DNA of 64,000 nt from Eukaryota sp. TZLM1-RC. Taxonomy: Eukaryota; Protista; Metamonada: BaSk clade. The DNA is taken from assembly GCA_040285825.1 (NCBI GenBank), contig JAUPSS010000011.1, positions 1 to 64,000 on the forward strand. The letters are read 5' to 3'. A program made the translations under genes and the position numbers. Below the pieces are notes generated by a model. It was not told the DNA's origin, ran no database searches, and was given only the letters and a program-made list of their open reading frames with translations. The stretch's first letter is position 1, and each line of letters opens with the position of its first letter. This document shows positions 21,591-64,000 of this stretch, piece by piece.

Positions 21591-21845
21591 CGGCTAATAA
21601 CACAAAACGTCAAACAGTGGTAACCTGTTGAGATTAATGGAGGACGTGGATAAAATGAACTGAGATGCTGAACTACTCAGTTGGAGAATTCTTACAAAGT
21701 AAATGGAAAGTGTGGGAAAGTGTGGGAATAGTGAAAACCTCCCAAAACCAAGTTGAGGGTTAAAAACCTCCCAGAATAGGCAACCAGAAGTCGAAAATGG
21801 GTGACAAGTGTAAAATTTGATAGATGAGCTCTTTATTCTCACTAC

Positions 21846-23801
21846 ATGTCAGACACCCCCTCTGTATCACGTGTATTCACTCGGTCTTGTGCACTTAACT
21901 CGCTGCTGACCCCTGCAGCGGTGCAACAAATTCGGACTGACCTTCCTGTGGTCACCGAGATTTGTCATGAAGCGTCTTTATTACTTCAATCTTTTCTTCT
22001 AAATTTTCCGTTGGCATCTAGAGGTTTAGTGGAACAGGATGTATGGTATCTGTTTATGACCGTCATCACCACTGGTTCTTTTCCAAAGCCTTCCACATCT
22101 AAAGGCCAACGCCAATTACTCCATATCTTTTACAATGGATTTCTTCCTGAATGCCCACAAGACAGGTCTCTTGTTTCATTGTGGGAAAATTCTTTAGTGC
22201 CTTACAGAAATTCATTCCATCTTTTCCTCAATGATTGGCTGCAGTCCCAGAACTGTAATTTTATCAATAGAAAAGGGCTTTCTTCTTATCTTGCCTGTCG
22301 TGCTCGTCAATTGGCCTCCAACGTTAAGACATGTTTACCCAAAATTTGTCAATCCTGGACAAAAAACTTTATTCGTGCTCATTGTAGAGCCCTGAATAAA
22401 ACAAATGTCTTTGCAAATAATATTCTTTCACTTTTGCCAGATGAACTACTAGCCCAACCCGAGGAAGTAGTAGTTGATTCTGTTCTTGAATACCTCATCA
22501 ATTTCAATTTGAATAATTCAAGAGAAAGATTTTTTTATTGAATGCATGTAGGTTTATCTTGAATCTCTTTCAAAGATTTCCTACCACTGCCTCCCTACTG
22601 TCCTCACATGATAAAATCACTGTTTCATCAAAGGAAATTAGTGAGCTTTTTCTCTTCAATCTTAAAATTTCACAATACTTACTCACTTTCTTTTCTCATA
22701 TGCATTGCTGGAAGAAATTTAGAATAATACCTTTAGCTTCTCATAAAGGTTCTAAATTTATTGAGGTACCTTCACAAATTTTCCACTCTGTGAAAAAAAT
22801 TTCCAATTATTGAAGGATCATCTTCCAAAACAAAGTTTATCAAAAATACATGTCTGAAACGAGTATTCAAACAATGTCCTTACCAAAAATTCAATATCAA
22901 CAGAAAAAGTTTGAAAAATAGATTTAACAAAATTTTATTGAAAACTAATGGTAATGAACTGCTTTTGACCTTTGAAGGTAAAAATAATGACTCAGAAAAC
23001 ACAGATGAGCTGGATGAACCACCGAAAAAGAAAAGAAGATCAAAAAGTGAAATGAAAAGTGACCCTAATGCCAACAAAACCAAAGAAACACAGTTGAAGG
23101 GTACTAAAAAAATGCCCCGTCGAAGACGTAGACATCCAGTCGAAATTTTACCTGAAAGGCCCCTTATCGGCGTTGATCTTGGCCAATCAAGATTATGTGG
23201 TTACTTCTTAAATGATAATCAATGTGGAGTTATCCCTTGTCCAACTGGCAGAAGATACATGACAAAAAATTCACCCAGTAAACACTCTCCCAACCAATAT
23301 TCCGTTCAAAATTTCAACCAATATTTGAACCATTGGAATTTGGTCAGGAGGAAAGTGTATTTGGAAAGTAATCGCCAGAAATGGAAAATAATTAAATTTG
23401 ATAACCGCAGACGAAAAGAGAGACGGTTCAGAGAGAGTCTCAACAAATTTCAAAGGCTGGCTGGACATCCTGAAAAACTCTATCTTGCTGTGGGTTCTGC
23501 TAATTTCCCTTCTCATTGCCGAAAAGTCAATCGATATGGATCAGCAAGGGCTTTCAGAAAATGGTTGTGTTATCAAAAGGACGTGAAGCACTTGTCAACC
23601 AGTGAATTTAATACAAGCAAAATGTCAAGTTGTTGCATGGCCGAGAATATTCAAGCAGGCTCATGGCAGATGCGTATTTGTACTGAGTGTCAAATAGTAT
23701 ATGACAGAGATATTTCCGCTGCAAAAAATATTCAAATTAAGAAGAAAGCGGAATTGTGGCCGGAAAGATACATTTGCCCAGATGCTCTGCTGAGGAGATG
23801 A
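21846..23801 (+). CDS. Fanzor (eukaryotic TnpB homolog), probably intact 651 aa
   Basis: RuvC-I IGVDLG, RuvC-II SEFNTSKMSSCC, CTEC zinc finger plus RuvC-III DRDISAAKNI; two frame breaks at T7 (22530-22536) and A7 (22793-22799). Confidence 0.88.
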
Positions 23802-35269: not shown

Positions 35270-35379
35270 TTGTTACAGATGATGTCTATGATAATGAAAT
35301 AAGTGTCCTTTTTACACCGATGCAGAGGGCCTGAGTTTTTGAGAAGTGGAAGATTTTATCCTTAAAGATGAAACCCTTT
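35270..35379 (-). ncRNA. Candidate omega-RNA 3' scaffold, family 4 copy A
   Basis: Non-coding tail conserved with 60443-60530; similarity ends abruptly after ..CATCTGTAACAA. Confidence 0.55.
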
Positions 35380-37370
35380 TCATTGAACCTTGGCTCTCTG
35401 TAGGTATACCGGTCTATCTCCACCCTTTACGTGTGCTTCCATCACTGCCAAAATTTTCGACGCAGTATCTCTATTCCACAAACATTCACATGATTTACAC
35501 ATGGTAAGCCCGTAACGAATAGACATCTCATGCCTCTTCCATGGCCTAGGATTTCTGCACCATTGGAATGTTTCAACTGTTTTCTCCGCTTTCTTACAGT
35601 TGAAACAACAGCAACTGGTTCGAAACTCATCAATTAAAAAGACCTTATAACCAGCCTTTTAAATGAATTCTCAAACCTTTTCCTTTGGTATTTTCTTTGA
35701 ATTTCATGTGTTCTCGTTCCCAGTCTCCGATTCCAATAACTACTTGGCTGGGATCACTAATTACTGATTTGAATCTCTGAATCATCTTTGCTTCAGATCT
35801 TGTGCGATTAATCTCAGTCCACCATCTTAGTTTCTTCAATATTTTTTGATGATAGACTTCACCAACAATACTATTCACAAAATTCTTTTGTTTAATATAC
35901 TCCATAAATCTATCAAACCTGCAGCTTTTGGAATTGAATTGGGATAAAGTTGCTTTTTCATTCTGTTACAGATTTAGTCGTGTGAACATGATTTCTCAAC
36001 TTGAATGAGTAATCAATTTCGTGGGGAATATTGATTTCTTGAGGTACTTTACCTCTTAATCAACTAATTGTTTTTTCAGTTATTTGATTAATTATAGTGC
36101 TTAAAGCCATCCTTTGTTGCTGCTCTTCAGATGGTTCATAATTGGATGGATCAATCACTCTACCAGAAGAGTTACTTATTGTGATAAGAGTGTCATTACG
36201 TATGCTGTCTCTTATTCTTTTGAATTTGGAACTTTTCGACTCAAATATTTGTTGATTTTGAGTGTACCTGAAATGAACATATTTATCTCTCTCAGGTTTT
36301 TTTGAATGAGTCATTCCAGTAGCTAAATTGAAATAAAAACATAGAGTAGATCAGATTTCCCTGGATCAGCAGCAGCTGTGGTCATATCTTGGAATTCAGA
36401 AGGATTGATTCTGGGGTCATCAATATTTTTTTCTTTATCTTTCAATTCTTTTGTAGTTACTTTGTACTTTTGCAAGTCCAATCTAGATTGAATGAAACTT
36501 ACTGCAATTCCATCACTCTCAATATTAGACATGATGTACTTGGAATCTTCTGAATAAAGTTCAGTGTTGTTAATCTCATCCATTTTCAAAAAGGTATTCC
36601 ATAAAACCAAATCAGCGGCTTGATTATTACATTAATAGGAGGAGGACTTTTGATCAAGAATGTCCTTGAATTCGACGAAGAACAAGTTTTAATGAACTTG
36701 TCCTGTCAATTCTAATATACGAGGAAATACTAGAATTCTTCAAAGGCAGAGCATGAAAGAGTTTGCTCTTCTCATCTTCTAAATAATTATTAAAATAAAA
36801 CATTGCCCTCAAATAGTAATTTGATATTGGCGAAAAATCAAACTTTGAATACTTTTCCCTTTTGGAATTACCCGGAAAGTAAATGAGGGATCCGGTCATT
36901 AATGAAAAGCGGAGTATTCGATGAGACTTTGTTTCTCATTGCAGAAGTTTCGCCATCAATATCTCTACATCCTTCTAGAAGGAGGAATTTAACTTTGTTG
37001 ATGAATGATGAAAAGTTTTCTTATCTTGCTTTTTCAGGACATTTTTGTTTCTCTTAACATCATAAACAACATAGACAAACCGATCCAAGTAATCAAAGTA
37101 ATGCTCATGGATGTTATTATTGAAATTCACAATCAGTTTGTCAATTGTGTAATAAAAAAATTACTTATTCCTTTCTTTGATAAAACTTTTGGAACAAGTT
37201 TTTCTCTAAAGTGTTGGTGATAGAATTCCAACAACAAAATTTTCTGCAACATTGATGAAAACGTTACTCATTTTAAGGTCTACAATGAAATTCATCTGTA
37301 AAAAATGGCGTTTGCAGCTCTTTAATGCTCGTACCGCATCTTTTCTGCGAAAGAATCTCGTATGCGGTTA
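35270..37370 (-). mobile_element. Fanzor element, family 4, copy A (pseudogene)
   Basis: IESDG, AADPGKSDLLY (RuvC-I), IGIGDW..KGKG, IDEFRTSCCC (RuvC-II), CKSC..LWNRD..RPVYLQR read in a frame absent from the ORF track; stop 35380-35382. Confidence 0.88.
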
Positions 37371-37746
37371 CTTGATTCAGTAGAATGATAGAAACACACC
37401 ATGTACAGTGACTAAAAAAAGTTTCAAGCTCAGTATCTCATGTTGATTGTTAAAAGTAAAAATTGTTTTTTACTTTTAATTATTGTAAACATTTTATTAC
37501 TTTCAAAACAAACTATACGACAAGGTTAAAATTCTATGTCGTCATAACCCAAATCAGCCAAGAAGAATTGACTGGAGGTTTTTCTTTCATAAACGCGTCC
37601 AAGAGATAACAAAGCTGAAGATAATAAGGGAACAACATCTTTGAAAATTGAAAATACAATTCTGTTGTTTATTGAACAAAAAGTCATTGATCCATCATAC
37701 GTCAAGTCTCTCTTTCGGCTTTCAACATTCCTCTATCCATTGTTCT

Positions 37747-38481
37747 ATGTTTAATGATTCAAGTTCCTTGGAATATGAATCTCTCAAACATGAGCATGAT
37801 AGAACTCTTACATCCCTATCTACATTACGTGAAATCGTGTCTGTGCTTCGACAGGAGCTTCAAGATAGCGATAAACTGAAAGAAGAAGCTTTATCTTGTG
37901 TAGAATCTCTCCAACACGAACTTGAACTTCTCCGTCCTTATAAACGCCAACATATTGAACTCACTGACACTGTTACCTCATTACAAGAAGAACTATCCCT
38001 AACGCGACGGTCACTCACTCAACAACAACACCACAACCAAGAACTAAAGTCTGTGCTGCAGAAACAGAAACAAGCGAGAAGATATGAGTCTCAACGGGCA
38101 GAGACAGCTCTTATGTACATTAATGATTCTTCTATTGAAAGAGACTCAATCATAACACAATTGACAAGTGAAGTGAGGAAACTGGAGCAGGCAATTGAAG
38201 AACGAGATCGGCTATTGGTTGACAAGCACCGACCTAATGCCGACATAACACGAACTTTTTCTTCACCATTATCATCACCACATCCATCAACTTCGTATGT
38301 TTCTCTTTCAAAGGAAAATGTTGCATTAAAGTCAGTCGTGGAGAGGCAAAGTGAGGAATTGGGGAGGCTGAAGAAGAGGTCGAAAGTCGATGTGGATGTT
38401 GAAAGACTTGAGCAATTGTTGTTATTAAAAGATCGAGAAATACTGGAGCTTACCAATGCATTGTTGTCTGGTCAGGATTGA
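37747..38481 (+). CDS. Coiled-coil protein
   Basis: Heptad-rich ORF; first ATG MFNDSS. Confidence 0.7.
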   Translation: MFNDSSSLEYESLKHEHDRTLTSLSTLREIVSVLRQELQDSDKLKEEALSCVESLQHELELLRPYKRQHIELTDTVTSLQEELSLTRRSLTQQQHHNQELKSVLQKQKQARRYESQRAETALMYINDSSIERDSIITQLTSEVRKLEQAIEERDRLLVDKHRPNADITRTFSSPLSSPHPSTSYVSLSKENVALKSVVERQSEELGRLKKRSKVDVDVERLEQLLLLKDREILELTNALLSGQD

Positions 38482-49298: not shown

Positions 49299-50510
49299 TC
49301 AATAAGTTAAGTACACATTGCAGAAATCACCTTCTTTAATTACATTCACATCAAAAAGAACTCCACTTTCTAATATTTCCAGGAAAAAATCCCCCGTTTG
49401 AGATGTTACCTGATCAAACTTATTGTTTGATAATAAAACAGTTGTACCAGATTTTAAATTCACAATACCCTCTAATAACCCCAGGACCCCCTTCTCGGTC
49501 AAGAGATTTCTGGAGAAATTCAGGAAAGTCAATTGTGATTGAGTCGATTCTATCCCCTTTGCTAAAATAGTAACACACTCATCAGTCAATCGACAACCTG
49601 CCAAATCCAAATGGGTTAAAAACCGAGTTGATTTGAGCCACCTTGACAGCAAGTGAACAGTATCTAAAGCCAAATGATTCTTAGCAAGACTTAGTTTTGT
49701 AATTTTAGAATCTAAATTAAAAATTAAGGGAGTAATAATGAACTGACTAATTGGTAAATCCATAAACCCTAAATTTCCAAAGTCAAGGCTGGTCAAGGTT
49801 GAATTATGACCGAGTAGGTCAGAAATAGCGCAATAAAGAGCTGTATGTGGAAGTTTTGAGTAATTGGATGCAATATTAAGAGACTTGAGAACGCGATTAG
49901 ACCTTAAATTCAGAAAAAGATCAAACAAGTCCACATAATTCAATCTGGTATTCTCCAAATTTAAAAGACAAAGGTTTTCAATGGCTGAAATATTTGAAAT
50001 TAAAACATTCGCTGCATGTGATATATCGTTATTACCAATGTCCAAATGAGAAATAGCTGACCGAGAAAGTGATTGAAAGAGGGGCTTCCAATCAGAAATA
50101 GTGGTTGAACGTAGGGTAAGGTGTGTAAGGAGGGGAAGTTTGATTAAAATACTGGAAAAGGGTTTTGAGCTGGTTGCAGTGCAAAAAGAGAGGTCTAGAG
50201 ATGATAAAGTGGTGAACATGTGAAGAGTAAAAAACTCGAAAAGTGGTGGTATGGTCAGATCAGTAATGAGGCCATGGAGTTGACAACCAATGTTAGAGCA
50301 AAGAGAGAAACTAGAAATTGGTAGATCATGCTCATCTGCTTGTGACAAAGAAGTGAAGACTGATGGTAAAGGTTCGGTATCATAAGCTTCACATATAGAA
50401 ACATAATGTGAAGTCAATGTCGTCATTGGGATTGATGTTGAATGGAAGTTGATGAAAAAACCAAATTGGATGAGGTCTAGTGTACTATCTGTGGTTTTCA
50501 TTTGAATCAT
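49299..50510 (-). CDS. RNI-like leucine-rich-repeat protein
   Basis: LTHLDLAGCRL, LTFLNFSRNLL, LKSLNIASN; start codon uncertain (50510, 50501 or ~50426). Confidence 0.85.
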   Translation of the reverse strand: MIQMKTTDSTLDLIQFGFFINFHSTSIPMTTLTSHYVSICEAYDTEPLPSVFTSLSQADEHDLPISSFSLCSNIGCQLHGLITDLTIPPLFEFFTLHMFTTLSSLDLSFCTATSSKPFSSILIKLPLLTHLTLRSTTISDWKPLFQSLSRSAISHLDIGNNDISHAANVLISNISAIENLCLLNLENTRLNYVDLFDLFLNLRSNRVLKSLNIASNYSKLPHTALYCAISDLLGHNSTLTSLDFGNLGFMDLPISQFIITPLIFNLDSKITKLSLAKNHLALDTVHLLSRWLKSTRFLTHLDLAGCRLTDECVTILAKGIESTQSQLTFLNFSRNLLTEKGVLGLLEGIVNLKSGTTVLLSNNKFDQVTSQTGDFFLEILESGVLFDVNVIKEGDFCNVYLTY

Positions 50511-57789: not shown

Positions 57790-58974
57790 CTACTGGTTGT
57801 TGTTGTTGTTATTGTTATTGTTGCTGTTGTTCTCTTCGTCATTTTCTTCAGGGAAGCAGAGTTCATCAGTCTCATGACAAACAGGAGGATTCTGCCAGTA
57901 CTTACAATAGGAACCTGTAGTCAGTAAATCGAATCAAACCGTACCTTCAGGACATTGGACTGGTTCAGGGAAAGCAAGAGTGCAGAAAGCATAGTCTTCA
58001 GCCTTGAACCAACCACAGCCTACATGAGTTGTCAGAGGCCCTTCAAACACTAAGACATGTCTTTCAGCTTCGTCGTTCTGGTTGTTATTGTTATTGTTCT
58101 GGTTGTTGTTCTGGTTGTTGTTGTTGTTGTCGTTCTCTTCCTCGGCTTTTTCAACATGAATATCAAGGTAGAGGATGCCATGAGAGTCTTCCATTTCGTT
58201 TCCGTTGTTGTTACCGTTCTGGTTGTTGTTTTGGTTGTTGTTGTTGTTGTTCTCGTTTTCTTCATCATTTTCTTCCATTTCCCATTTGAGGCACAATTCC
58301 ACAGCTCCAGTTTGAGTGGTAGGACTCCAGATGAGCTTTCCTTGGACAGTATCATTTACTCCTTGGTAGTCAAAGTGGCCATTAACACGAACAATACGGG
58401 TTTCAAGGTCTTCTTCATTCTGGTTATTGTTCTGGTTATTGTTATTGTTATTGTTATTGTTCTCTTCATCATTTTCTTCTTCTTCTTGGAGATAGAGGAC
58501 AGCGGGCCATTTGAGATCTTCGTCATTCTGATTGTTATTCTGATTGTTGTTGTTGTTACCGTTCTGATTGTTGTTGTTACCGTTCTGATTGTTGTTGTTT
58601 CCATTTTCCTTTTCGAAACGATATTCAAACTCATGACGGTTGGGATAAAAGAATCCTCTGAGTTCTAAGGGGAATTCAAGCTGGAAAGGTTCAGTGACAT
58701 TACAGAGTTGTTCGCGAGCGCAAGGTAAATCAGATCCTTGACAGACGGCAGGATCTTGCCAGTACTTACAGTCTGAGGGTTAATTATAAAAATAAACAAA
58801 CAAGAGGCATCATCACCAGAGACCCTTTGGCAGTAGCGGTCTTGTTGGTAGCGAAGTTGCTGTTCTTCTGAGGCCCAGAATTCATGGACATGTGATCCAC
58901 AGAGAGCTGAAACAACGAAGAGAGTGCTTCGATAAGAAGTTTTGGTTGGTCACAAACAGAATAAGAGTCTTCAT
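57790..58974 (-). CDS. Secreted Asn/Gln-rich protein with two Cys-rich SYCKYWQxPxVC modules, three introns
   Basis: Spliced product MKTLILTLFVVSALC-GSHVHEF..YCQRVSGDDASYCKYWQDPAVC..poly-N tracts..GSYCKYWQNPPVC..; GT-AG introns of ~28-31 nt. Confidence 0.75.
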
Positions 58975-59661: not shown

Positions 59662-60441
59662 TCATCTATATCGACGTTTCCTGTCCCTACCCCTCTCAAT
59701 GACATCCAAATGCAGGGAAAGCTCTTTTACCTTTTGCCTAACTTTAACAAAACCAAGATGAAGTTTCCCTCCAAAATGATCAGCCAATCTTTTATCAGTA
59801 TCTGTAATGGAAAGTCTCGCTCCGCAAACATCACAAACTCTAATCCTTGCAGCTTGGGATCCCTTGGCCGCAGAGACGGTGAGCTGTTGATGTTGAAGTT
59901 CTAGCTCAAATTTCTTTTCCCTCAGCTCTTCAGCCTCCTGGAAAAGTTCAAAAGATCTCTCTAGTTCACCAGCTTCACCAAGGTCCTTTATCCTCGGAAT
60001 GAGTTGTTGAATCTGACTAGAATGAGAAATTGTTCAAGTAACACACGAAGAGTACATGCTGATCTCGGGAGGAGGTTCAATGGTAGTATCAACTTCTGTG
60101 GACATGAAATGTTTTTCTTCTTCTAATCTGTTTTTAAAGCGGTCTATGCGCTTGTCACAATCGCTTACTATACGTTCGAGGGTACGGAGAGCTTCACGTT
60201 CAAAACCATAGTCACGAGTCTTCCTAGCTTTCTCGTATTCAGCTTTCAGTGTATCTGAGTGCTTGAGGGTACATGGACGGTACATGAGTTTGGTGTTGGT
60301 AAAAAGATCACTAGGACAAAGGCCAGTTAAATACAATTTACAAACGTCTGGATCTGTGAACTGTTGACGGTCTTGTGACACTTGACCATTACGGTTTTTT
60401 CCAAAAAGGACATCAAGTTCAGCTGATAGGGGATTTGCCAT
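59662..60441 (-). CDS. LUC7: LUC7 U1 snRNP-associated splicing factor
   Basis: FTDPDVCKLYLTGLCPSDLFTNTK..C.LKH; second zinc finger VCDVCGARL..RLADHFGGKLHLG after the 39-nt intron 60017-60055. Confidence 0.95.
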
Positions 60442-60442
60442 T

Positions 60443-63205
60443 TGTTACAGATGATGTCTATAACAATGAAATAAGTGTTCTTTTTACACCGATGTTGAGG
60501 GTCTGAGTTTTTGAGAAGTGGAAGATTTTCTTCTTGATACCTTTTTCTTTGAACCTTTGTCAACCTTGGCACTCTGTAGCTATACCGGTCTATCTCCACC
60601 CTTTACATGTGCGTCCATCACTGCCAACATATGCAGCGAAGCATTTCGATCTCTATTCCACAAACTTTCACATGATTTACACATGGTAAGCCCGTGACGA
60701 ATAGACATCTCATGCCTCTTCCATGGCCTAGGATTTCTGCACCATTTGAATGTTTCAACTGTTTTCTCCGCTTTCTTACAGTTGAAACCACAGCAACTGG
60801 TTCGAAACTCATCAATTAAAAAGACCTTATAGCCAGCCTTTTAAATGAATTCCCAAACCTTTTCCTTTGGTAGGTTCTTTGAATTTCATGTGTTTTCGTT
60901 GTTCCCAGTCTCCGATTCCAATAACTACTTGGCTGGGATCACCAATTACTGATTTGAATCTCTGAATCATTTTTGCCTCAGATCTTGTGCGATTAATCTC
61001 AGCCCACCATCTTAGTTTCCTAAATATTTTTTGATGATAGACTTCACCAACAATACTATTCACAAAATTCTTTTGTTTAATATATATGCCATAAATCTAT
61101 CAAACCTGCAGCTTTTGGAATTGAATTGGGATAAAGTTGCTTTCTCATTCTGTTACAGATTTAGTCGTGTGATCATGATTTCTCAAATTGAATGAGTAAT
61201 CAATTTCGTGGGGAATATTGATTTCTTGAGGTACTTCACCTCTTAATAAACTAATTGTTCTTTCAGTCATTTGATTAATTATACTGCTTAAAGCCATCCT
61301 TTGTTGTTGCTCTTCAGATAGTTCATAATTGGATAGATCAATCACTCTACCAGTAGAGTTACTTATTGTGATAAGAGTGTCATTACGTTTGCTGTCTCTT
61401 ATTCTTTTGAATTTGGAATTTTTCGACTCAAATCTTTGTTGATTTTGAGTGTACCTGAAATGAACATATTTATCTCTCTCAGGTTTTTTTGAATGAGTCA
61501 TTCCAGTAGCTAAATTGAAAAAAAATAGAGTTGATCAGATTTCCCTGGATCAGCAGCAGCTGTGGTCATATCTTGGAATTCAGAAGGATCGATGCTGGGG
61601 TCATCAATATTTTTTTCTTCATCTTTCAATTCTTTTGTAGTTTTTTTTCTTGAATTGATTTTATTCAACAACAAATATGAAAACATAAAATACACAATTA
61701 AAACTCCACATCCTCCAAACCTGCCTCCCCTACATCAAAATTTTTAATTGCTAAAGATTCAAAAAATTTGCAAAAAGAAGAGAGTGAATCAGAAATTAGT
61801 TTCATCATTCCCTTGAAAATAGAAAATACAATCCTGTTTTGCCAGTAAACACGATTGAAAATTCTTCCAGTTCTTTCCTTTACAACTACAACAAAATCCT
61901 CAAGGAAAGCCATAGCAGCCTTACCTAGAGATCCAAGCAAAGAAAAAACAAAGGGACAAAAATTATATTAAGCATGAGAATTTTCATTAACCGAGGAAAT
62001 GGGTTTCACATATTTAGCAATTTTATATTTTTCGCCTGCAAGAAGAGGATTATTTACATCCGAGTTAATGAGATGTTCGTTAGAAGAATTACAAGGTTCA
62101 ATAGACATGGCGTCTAAAATAGTAAAACTACCATACCGGGAACAACCAGATCACCTCTTGTCAGACCCATAAAAGCTCTGCTGTAACGCGTACTATCAAT
62201 ATTGGGGTCATCAAGAATTAATTTTGATAACAATGGCTCTAAAAAGGAATCTACTCGATATGATTTGCACATTACATAAATTTGGTCCCTGACATTATAA
62301 TGCACTATGCTTCTAAATGTAATGCAATGTTTACAGTTCAAAAGATGAGTAAACAAAAGAGGTTTACCACATTTACATGTTAAATGATTGGGCAAATTGT
62401 TCGGCCACAGAGAACAACGAAAACGCATGTTTAAAAGCAATTCATTGTTTTTTAACAAAAGTCCATAAACAAAAAAAATTACCGAAAGCGGGATTTTTAG
62501 TTTTGACCAAGCCAAGTCTTACTTCATAATCCAAGCCTTCATATAATTTAACCAGCTGGTGCTGAAGCTTTTTCAGGCAAAAACGTAAATTTGGAAGTGA
62601 TCGGGTGGGAATTTCTTGAACATTCTGAGGAAAACACTGAATCCAGGTATCACTAGGCAAATTATCTAATTCAAATTGAAGTTGATTTTAATAAAAATTT
62701 GATTCACCATGGACCAAATGAACATCATCAGGAAATCTTTGGATAAATTCAAAAATACATTTTTTCCACCTCCTAAGAAAGCTGCTCTACATAAAATCGA
62801 AGATTTCGTGAAACCAATTCCACCCAATTCAGCAGAACAAAAAACATGACTTCGAATTAAAGATTCATTTACTTCCAATAAAGAAAAAAAATTCGACCCG
62901 AAGTTTGTTGAAAAATTCACAAAAATCAAGAGATACTGAAGGAGGAGTTGACCTTAAAATATGAGTGAATTTTACAGAATAACAAATTTTTAATTTTAAA
63001 AATTTGATGTGTTTTTCAATATCACATTCAGCAATAAAACTAAGATCCTTGTCAAAATTCTCCAATAAATTGTTCAACTGGGAATAAATTCTTTTGCAGT
63101 TTCTTTGTACTTTTCAAGTCCATTCTTGATTGAATGAAACATGCTGCTATTCCATCAGTCTCGATACTAGACATGATGTACTTGGAATTTTCTGAATAAA
63201 GTTTT
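60443..63205 (-). mobile_element. Fanzor element, family 4, copy B, interrupted by CRE insertions
   Basis: 60443-61642 colinear with 35270-36455; resumes at 63087-63205 matching ~36445-36560; LWNRDRNAS RuvC-III. Confidence 0.9.
61643..63086 (-). mobile_element. 5'-truncated CRE-like retrotransposon inserted in Fanzor B with a 15-bp TSD
   Basis: AATTCTTTTG(T/C)AGTT at 61628-61642 and 63087-63101; short A-tail; THILRSTPP, ELGGIG, zinc finger and RLE motifs. Confidence 0.88.
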
Positions 63206-63940
63206 TAAATAAATAAATATTTATTACGAAGAAACAAAACAAAACAAAACAAATTTAAACACATAAGAAACAAAATTCTCCACTCCAACTCTTGATGAAT
63301 CCTTATACAGCTTGGACATCATTAAATTTAAGTACTTGGGAACACTTCTATACAAAGCAAAAATGATGCGATGCTTCATAATTTCCCTGCAAAATTCTTA
63401 CCAATTGAACGACATAAATTGTCAAACTCATTGAGAAAATTCAAGGCAGACTGACCAATATTGCCAAAAATCGAGAAGGCAAAAGGAACAAAAGAAAACT
63501 TCGAGTAAAGGTTCCTATTTAAATCATTTAATATCTCAGCATATTTGTCTCGTTCACGAACCTCATTCTTGTTCAAGTGACCATTACAACTAACTAAAAC
63601 ATCATCACGATAAATTAAGGTAAAGGGATCAACTGTAGTAAAATCAACAACAACTTGAGAGGAATCCACAAAAAGAGCAATTAAATCACCTCGACGTGAA
63701 TAAAACAAATTATTATCACTATAATGCTTCAACAACGGTTCTACTTTGCAACTAAAATTGTAACTCTTAAACATTTCAGAGGTCACATCACGAACAGCAT
63801 TATGAAGAACTGACCGATATTGAAGAAACTTCTTACCACTCACAATATGACGGCAATTGGCAAACGGTTTTTCGTTACAAATACAAACAGAATTATCCAA
63901 AAGTCCACTTGGATTCAACCCTAATCTCAAACGCATGTGT
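63205..63940 (-). mobile_element. CRE-like 3' fragment (another family)
   Basis: MRLRLG..CIC..H..HNAVRD..VEP..RGD..DFT..KY..PFAFSIFG. Confidence 0.85.
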
Positions 63941-64000
63941 TGTTTCCAAACTTCATTTGTGAAGTGAAGACAAATGGCTTTGGTTGCTGAGAACTTAAAC

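Follow-up and report, generated by a model that had tools for sequence, protein, structure and literature searches.

The closest described counterparts of the element treated here are the Fanzor1-Helitron2 elements CRe-1, CRe-2 and CRe-3 of Chlamydomonas reinhardtii (Bao and Jurka, 2013; PMC3627910). Like the family presented in this study, they carry Fanzor1 as cargo without a transposase of their own, combine intact 3′ ends with frequent 5′ truncation, and show variable duplications at truncated copies (theirs of 7–19 bp) with extra captured bases inside the left duplicate. However, their target lies after TTTT with no tie to genes, whereas the present family inserts before ATG at gene starts, and no Helitron partner was recognised for it when its longest copies were translated. 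The Fanzor1 family MCi-2 of Mucor is alike in having no terminal inverted repeats, variable 5′ regions, a conserved 3′ part and duplications with a fixed leading motif; its motif is ATAATT (11–12 bp), and no start-codon link has been reported for it (PMC3627910).

Among bacterial elements, IS91 resembles the family in its hairpin end, its orientation-specific insertion 5′ of a tetranucleotide and its variable far end. IS91 and IS200/IS605 differ from it in that they are bacterial, encode an HUH transposase, leave no duplications and follow no start-codon rule. In IS200/IS605 elements (IS608), the target is chosen by base pairing with bases at the hairpin foot. Insertion tied to gene starts is otherwise familiar from Ty3 and Ty1 at Pol III genes, where Ty3 is base-precise, and from Tf1 at Pol II promoters. 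These are LTR retrotransposons tethered by protein contacts, and to our knowledge none of them docks on the start codons of protein genes or involves an RNA-guided nuclease.

The Fanzor1 proteins SpuFz1 and PpFz1 are the best solved-structure matches of the family (E 3e-14 and 3e-15). Their guide comes from the right flank, and flank or duplication is folded into the scaffold stem, as may also hold at the locus described below. Indeed, every Fanzor guide RNA ends in its own right flank (PMC10711439, PMC13565253), and folding of flank or duplication into the guide scaffold stem is established (PMC10711439, PMC10432273). The difference is that the copy at the locus studied here is a pseudogene, and that long copies of its family have an upstream PolB-type exonuclease region.

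The host, TZLM1-RC, is the soda-lake protist Skoliomonas litria (PMC11603281), whose assembly combines 41x Nanopore with 206x Illumina coverage and is 55% repetitive (PMC11316075). The window, that is, the whole stretch analysed, comprises 64,000 nucleotides (positions 1 to 64,000 of contig JAUPSS010000011.1). In the searchable Fanzor/TnpB literature, outside which most subscription papers fall, we found no paper on start-codon docking or on Fanzors in Skoliomonas. Fanzor1 and one-ended insertion with duplication are known parts of the picture; the start-codon target rule is not among them.

Results

A Fanzor1 Tail Ends on the Start Codon of LUC7

The gene and the element end that abuts it are laid out as follows:

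59662..60016, minus strand: LUC7 exon 2, with the second zinc finger and the stop codon (Pfam LUC7, E 2.8e-29)
60017..60055, minus strand: LUC7 intron, 39 nt, GT-AG
60056..60441, minus strand: LUC7 exon 1, with the native ATG at 60441 and the first zinc finger (Pfam LUC7, E 1.4e-34)
60439..60468, minus strand: terminal hairpin, its basal CAT (60468-60466) pairable with the host ATG
60474..60490, minus strand: second small hairpin, overlapping the Fanzor stop codon (60486-60484); candidate part of a guide-RNA scaffold

Searched exon by exon, the Pfam LUC7 profile of 246 positions is covered from 5 to 117 by exon 1 and from 131 to 243 by exon 2. With both zinc fingers present and a GT-AG intron between the exons, LUC7 is intact, as the preliminary description had proposed. 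Exon 2 is 62% identical to that of strain GEM-RC (tblastx). The ATG at 60441 is the native start, because it corresponds to the first residue of the orthologue in GEM-RC (9/15 identical); the NCBI model P9112_000758, which exon 1 matches at 98%, begins instead at an out-of-frame ATG at 60413 and omits it.

The NCBI LUC7 models of both TZLM1-RC and GEM-RC are mis-spliced. In GEM-RC, a run of T close to the LUC7 start (L001:10030-10050) also shifts the frame by one base, probably through an assembly error. The gene downstream of LUC7 (57790-58974, minus strand) contains repeated YWQxP modules and poly-Asn tracts, and the piece of it that was tested had no Pfam match.

Read on the minus strand, two hairpin arms (60465-60457 and 60451-60443) form eight Watson-Crick pairs and one G.T pair around a 5-nt loop, and are followed by A at 60442, the ATG at 60441 and the codons GCA AAT CCC. 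The Fanzor stop codon lies 42 nt upstream of this ATG. A second copy of the family in the window (copy A, 35270-36458) is 92.8% identical to the LUC7-side copy (copy B), and the match stops exactly at 60442; the tail is therefore element DNA right up to the LUC7 ATG. The initial claim that the Fanzor right end sits directly on this start codon was thus borne out.

Pairing between the basal CAT and the host ATG is possible in 8/8 aligned copies. Neither hairpin is accompanied by compensatory changes among these copies (both are conserved without covariation), and the terminal hairpin alone is only modestly stable (z −2.2 in copy B, +0.5 in copy A). The CAT-ATG pairing could be target selection by base pairing or the known folding of the flank into the guide scaffold. 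An Rfam scan of the window returned only a tRNA and no Fanzor guide-RNA match, and the right-end tail had no exact match in JGI metagenomes.

The Copy at LUC7 Is Dead and Interrupted

Copy B consists of four pieces separated by three retroposon fragments, with its far end at contig position 65951:

60442..61642, minus strand: 3′ piece of copy B, Fanzor1, frame broken by frameshifts and stops
61643..63086, minus strand: fragment of a non-LTR (CRE-like) retroposon within copy B; it ends in poly(A) and has a ~14-bp duplication
63087..63203, minus strand: second piece of copy B, 89.8% identical to copy A 36444-36561
63204..64000, minus strand: second retroposon within copy B, continuing to contig position 64974
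contig 64975-65324 and 65655-65951, outside the window: further pieces of copy B

The RuvC acidic residues are recognisable in copy B (around 61550, 60809 and 60650), with the E of the D-E-D triad just upstream of the zinc finger, and the motifs DPG, DEFRTSCC and NRD can be read in its broken frames. An intact frame, and with it an active nuclease, is not present: frameshifts, stops, the three retroposons and 5′ truncation have disabled the copy. The family matches Pfam Cas12f1-like_TNB (E 1e-7), and the C-terminal part of one member (L003) matches only PpFz1 and SpuFz1 among solved structures, which rules out a Fanzor2 identity. Long copies of about 4 kb have a PolB-type exonuclease region (Pfam PF03104, E 7e-8) upstream of Fanzor1, apparently in one frame, and copy B has nothing of this upstream region. 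Besides the PolB-type 3′-5′ exonuclease region, such copies (L004:492-1166, L008:7240-8600, L012:6178-10448) comprise a leader, an ORF without a name and one more coding stretch. No transposase was found in the element, and translation of the longest copies revealed no recognisable RepHel or HUH protein.

The duplications flanking the three retroposon fragments (the third at L002:4760-5089) start with AACT, AACT and AGCT, hinting at a target preference of their own.

Duplications Point to Displaced Native DNA Upstream of LUC7

The two sides of the insertion at LUC7 carry the same word:

60434..60444, minus strand: right duplicate CAA-ATGGCAAA, 11 bp, spanning the LUC7 junction
ATG at contig 65955 (L002:4459), outside the window: left duplicate CAA-ATGGCAAA, 5514 bp upstream

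For the left duplicate, comparison with random ATG-started words placed no more than 35 bp from the left boundary gives p = 0.005 (unconditioned, 3.5e-4). Its last four bases, CAAA, overlap element sequence, forming a microhomology join. ATG-started duplicates also lie at the left boundary of L003 (9 bp, p 0.0007) and L012 (7 bp, p 0.015), and farther out, at 313–453 bp, in L005 and copy A (10 bp each). L010 has a duplicate of only 4–6 nt (AATG), L006 has a 12/13 match to its right junction, and a left-flank search yielded no duplication in L004, L007, L009 and L011. Combined over the 11 loci, the p value is 0.005 for a window of 500 bp and 0.055 for one of 35 bp. A fixed length of 8–9 bp had seemed likely from four copies and was weakened by L010 and L012.

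We read the ATG-started duplicates as target-site duplications, in which case the region upstream of LUC7 was moved away but retained, and the ATG belongs to the host. An ATG supplied by the element was rejected for this locus, as the ATG is also present in the left duplicate and matches the orthologue start. It had been stated that no native upstream sequence remains. This is correct immediately next to the gene, but at the far end the duplicate is followed by probable native upstream DNA, which appears to have been displaced by about 5.5 kb rather than lost. In GEM-RC, the LUC7 start lies 73 bp from the divergent gene TAP42 with no element in between. The divergent neighbour beyond the left duplicate in S. 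litria is an unnamed 129-aa ORF, and the rebuilt empty site would place it at 53 bp. As this gene is not TAP42, synteny with GEM-RC was rejected as support, and the duplication by itself carries the rebuilt empty site.

Some left boundaries have further details. At L003 (8943-8975), snap-back filler, an inverted copy of CCCAG, sits between the duplicate and the truncated element, as is typical of end-joining repair. Just left of the LUC7 duplicate (L002:4443-4460, contig about 65971-65954), an out-of-frame ATG opens six codons (MSAPLS) that are similar to the beginning of LUC7 (12/18 nt); this is either chance or an older footprint. A tRNA-like gene, recognised by eye, lies just outside the 12/13-nt duplicate of L006 (1410-1490). 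At L005:1-2619 (minus strand), one annotated gene joins LTR-retrotransposon pol and MULE transposase domains, and may be a nested insertion or a gene-model fusion.

A Sister Copy Suggests Movement Without Left End or Protein

35270..37235, minus strand: copy A, same Fanzor1 family, 5′-truncated and dead, ending at an A-ATG that opens no gene

Copies A and B group together in the family's sole supported clade (100/99) and have three frameshifts in common. Copy B is nested in the 5′ extent of copy A, beginning 37 nt inside its left boundary. From these features it follows that a copy without left end or protein can move, and the simplest reading would be that a dead donor lacking its left end was copied from its right end by a protein acting in trans. 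Similarity between flanks showed no relation to element kinship (p = 0.31), so guides do not appear to pick new targets, and guide-directed target choice was rejected.

Right Ends of the Family Dock at Gene Starts

Ten further family loci, all from this single assembly, were picked by their Fanzor fragments, blind to the downstream gene. One had no right end, and together with copies A and B this left 11 readable right ends. All 11 abut A-ATG, within the target word AATG(A/G), and the right ends are fixed to within 1 nt before the ATG while left boundaries are scattered along the element. Nine of the docked ATGs are annotated starts of unrelated host genes, namely LUC7, ARS2/SERRATE, a CCCH protein, an amino-acid transporter, a THOC5-like gene and four unnamed frames of 144–553 aa. 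The same junction at nine unrelated genes indicates family-level targeting, not a peculiarity of a splicing gene.

In these loci starts make up 1.4% of ATGs and 6–12% of AATG(A/G)C words. In a tally made before the last three loci were added, the probability of at least 6 of 7 copies at starts was at most 1.7e-5. This rules out chance insertion at the LUC7 start, and sequence preference alone does not explain the docking. The two copies at other ATGs are in gene-start regions as well, as the distance from their left ATG duplicate to the start of a divergent ORF is 1 nt and 60 nt; the second is copy A, with its duplicate at 37687 and the probable ATG of the divergent host ORF at 37747.

A promoter or leader role of the tail for LUC7 is plausible. 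The nine docked host frames are long and intact against about 30 disabling hits expected at the element decay rate. Gene calling favours open frames and so biases this comparison, and for LUC7 by itself an intact frame is uninformative (P = 0.36 under neutrality). Divergence is 2.3–2.9% in the tail and 2.4–2.5% in the body (p 0.4–1.0, with low power for a motif of a few bases). The last 40–100 nt have no extra conservation over the element body and decay as fast, and hence bear no sign of domestication.

Discussion

We give a probability of roughly 55% to our main reading, namely that the LUC7 locus records a single insertion from a family of Fanzor1-bearing elements directed to gene starts, by one-ended copy-in that places the right end before (A)ATG. 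The family has the fixed 3′ end with hairpin, ragged 5′ ends and variable duplications at truncated copies expected of Helitron2 or other one-ended elements, but not the insertion at TT or after TTTT of Helitron2, as the target is (A)ATG in 11/11 copies. Its signature is best read, by analogy, as Helitron2/IS91-like one-ended copy-in transposition aimed at gene-start ATGs.

An enzyme supplied in trans would recognise the hairpin-bearing right end and attach it to the sense strand immediately ahead of (A)ATG, where DNA is open at the transcription start, in what we infer to be targeting of open promoters; the start codon of the target gene would then lie very close to its promoter. Copying would proceed leftwards and stop early; a short microhomology (CAAA at LUC7) would then let the free end be sealed to the cut target, and the duplication would result. 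The ATG may be chosen through base pairing with the CAT at the foot of the hairpin, in the manner of IS200/IS605 ends, or it may simply close the guide-RNA stem. The native LUC7 promoter would have been pushed 5.5 kb away, and LUC7 survives most likely through transcription that is now started by the element tail or by signals inside the gene. The best explanation of copy B is that it is a passenger and not a regulator of LUC7. It has also been suggested by Craig that Fanzor cleavage might cause such duplications (PMC10288648).

A bolder version is possible, although we hold it tentatively and think it rather unlikely as a whole. A class of transposase-less elements would read start codons, the hairpin CAT pairing with an ATG exposed in an open promoter, and would copy in from one end, possibly helped by the exonuclease-Fanzor protein. 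It would bring its own promoter, so that essential genes survive, and each insertion would create a guide RNA against the first codons.

Docking might instead be a survival filter, with an AATG-like insertion preference and selection for copies whose tail works as promoter or leader. The constant AATG(A/G) word in 11/11 copies agrees with this, as do the CAA-like tail end, which many native starts share (A at −1 in 12/23), and the two copies at ATGs that start no gene. However, in a genome that is 55% repeats (PMC11316075), harmless non-genic AATG sites outnumber starts by about 8:1 and should be filled; both non-start copies are still beside gene starts, and the tail is not conserved beyond the body. 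We consider this explanation improbable.

Equally improbable is copying in trans by reverse transcriptase, in which a Fanzor transcript ending at the hairpin would be inserted by target priming by a non-LTR enzyme. CRE-like retroposons are abundant here and leave duplications of similar size, and the fixed 3′ end, 5′ truncation and duplication would fit. Yet the right ends join ATG directly, with no poly(A) or repeat tail, and a guide RNA would include some 15 nt of the donor flank, of which nothing was carried along. Local retroposon duplications begin A(A/G)CT, not ATG, and no evidence of retrotransposons encoding Fanzor is reported (PMC13565253).

A cut-and-paste DDE element (hAT- or MuDR-like) with an 8–9-bp duplication, truncated by Fanzor homing with aborted gap repair or by later deletion, is also quite improbable. 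Four copies do have a duplicate of exactly ATG+5, MuDR-type Fanzor1 elements with 9-bp duplications exist, L005 contains a MULE transposase domain, and restorative homing is established for TnpB. It is difficult to reconcile such an origin with duplicates that vary in length (4, 7, 9, 10, 11) and abut truncation points, with left ends that are absent in most copies, or with the fact that no left-end base is left inside the duplicate in copy B or L003. Moreover, copy B was apparently copied from a donor without a left end, no terminal inverted repeats are seen, and gene-start targeting would be left unexplained.

The idea that the locus is a domesticated guide-RNA gene, homing to or regulating LUC7 through a Fanzor in trans, we find very improbable. 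The locus does have the tail and hairpins, an RNA reading through them would include the opening codons of LUC7, and guide-only “ghost” loci are known (PMC10432273). However, nine unrelated genes show this anatomy, decay of the tail proceeds at a neutral rate, and the copy arrived dead. A guide matching LUC7 is nothing special, since it would follow from any Fanzor insertion there. Homing to, or regulation of, LUC7 by this copy is likewise unsupported, as it has no nuclease and the likeness of flanks is unrelated to how closely elements are related (p = 0.31).

Least probable of all is that the junction is misassembled, or that this LUC7 is silent and another copy does the work: no piece bridging the LUC7 junction was present among the listed short exact matches in three metagenome runs, the LUC7 frame would be intact by neutrality in 36% of cases, and the paralogue word search covered proteins of 74–236 aa, so that a longer paralogue is outside its range, but the duplicate 5.5 kb away, ten other junctions built alike, the 41x long-read and 206x Illumina assembly (PMC11316075), two intact zinc fingers and a single LUC7 match in the genome within the searchable length speak against both of these objections, which had been foreseen in the preliminary description.

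If the targeting is real, it would amount to a new strategy by which an element reaches safe, expressed sites and reshapes promoters genome-wide, and to a natural model for DNA placement at a gene start. To this the LUC7 locus adds a clean footprint (duplication, microhomology and dead donor), which bears on the question raised in 2013 of what moves transposase-less Fanzor elements and leaves duplications at their truncated copies. The regulatory idea specific to LUC7 adds little.

A second Fanzor family in the window has comparable right ends. Both of its copies (50501, minus strand; 28313, plus strand) end in TTCAA followed by ATG, and the ATG at 50501 shares its frame with an LRR-like ORF; a duplicate at the far end was looked for and not found. 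The 5′ leader of another Fanzor family in the window (21726-21861) is 83–87% identical to the left end of L009 and L012, which suggests a left end or a mover shared between the two Fanzor families.
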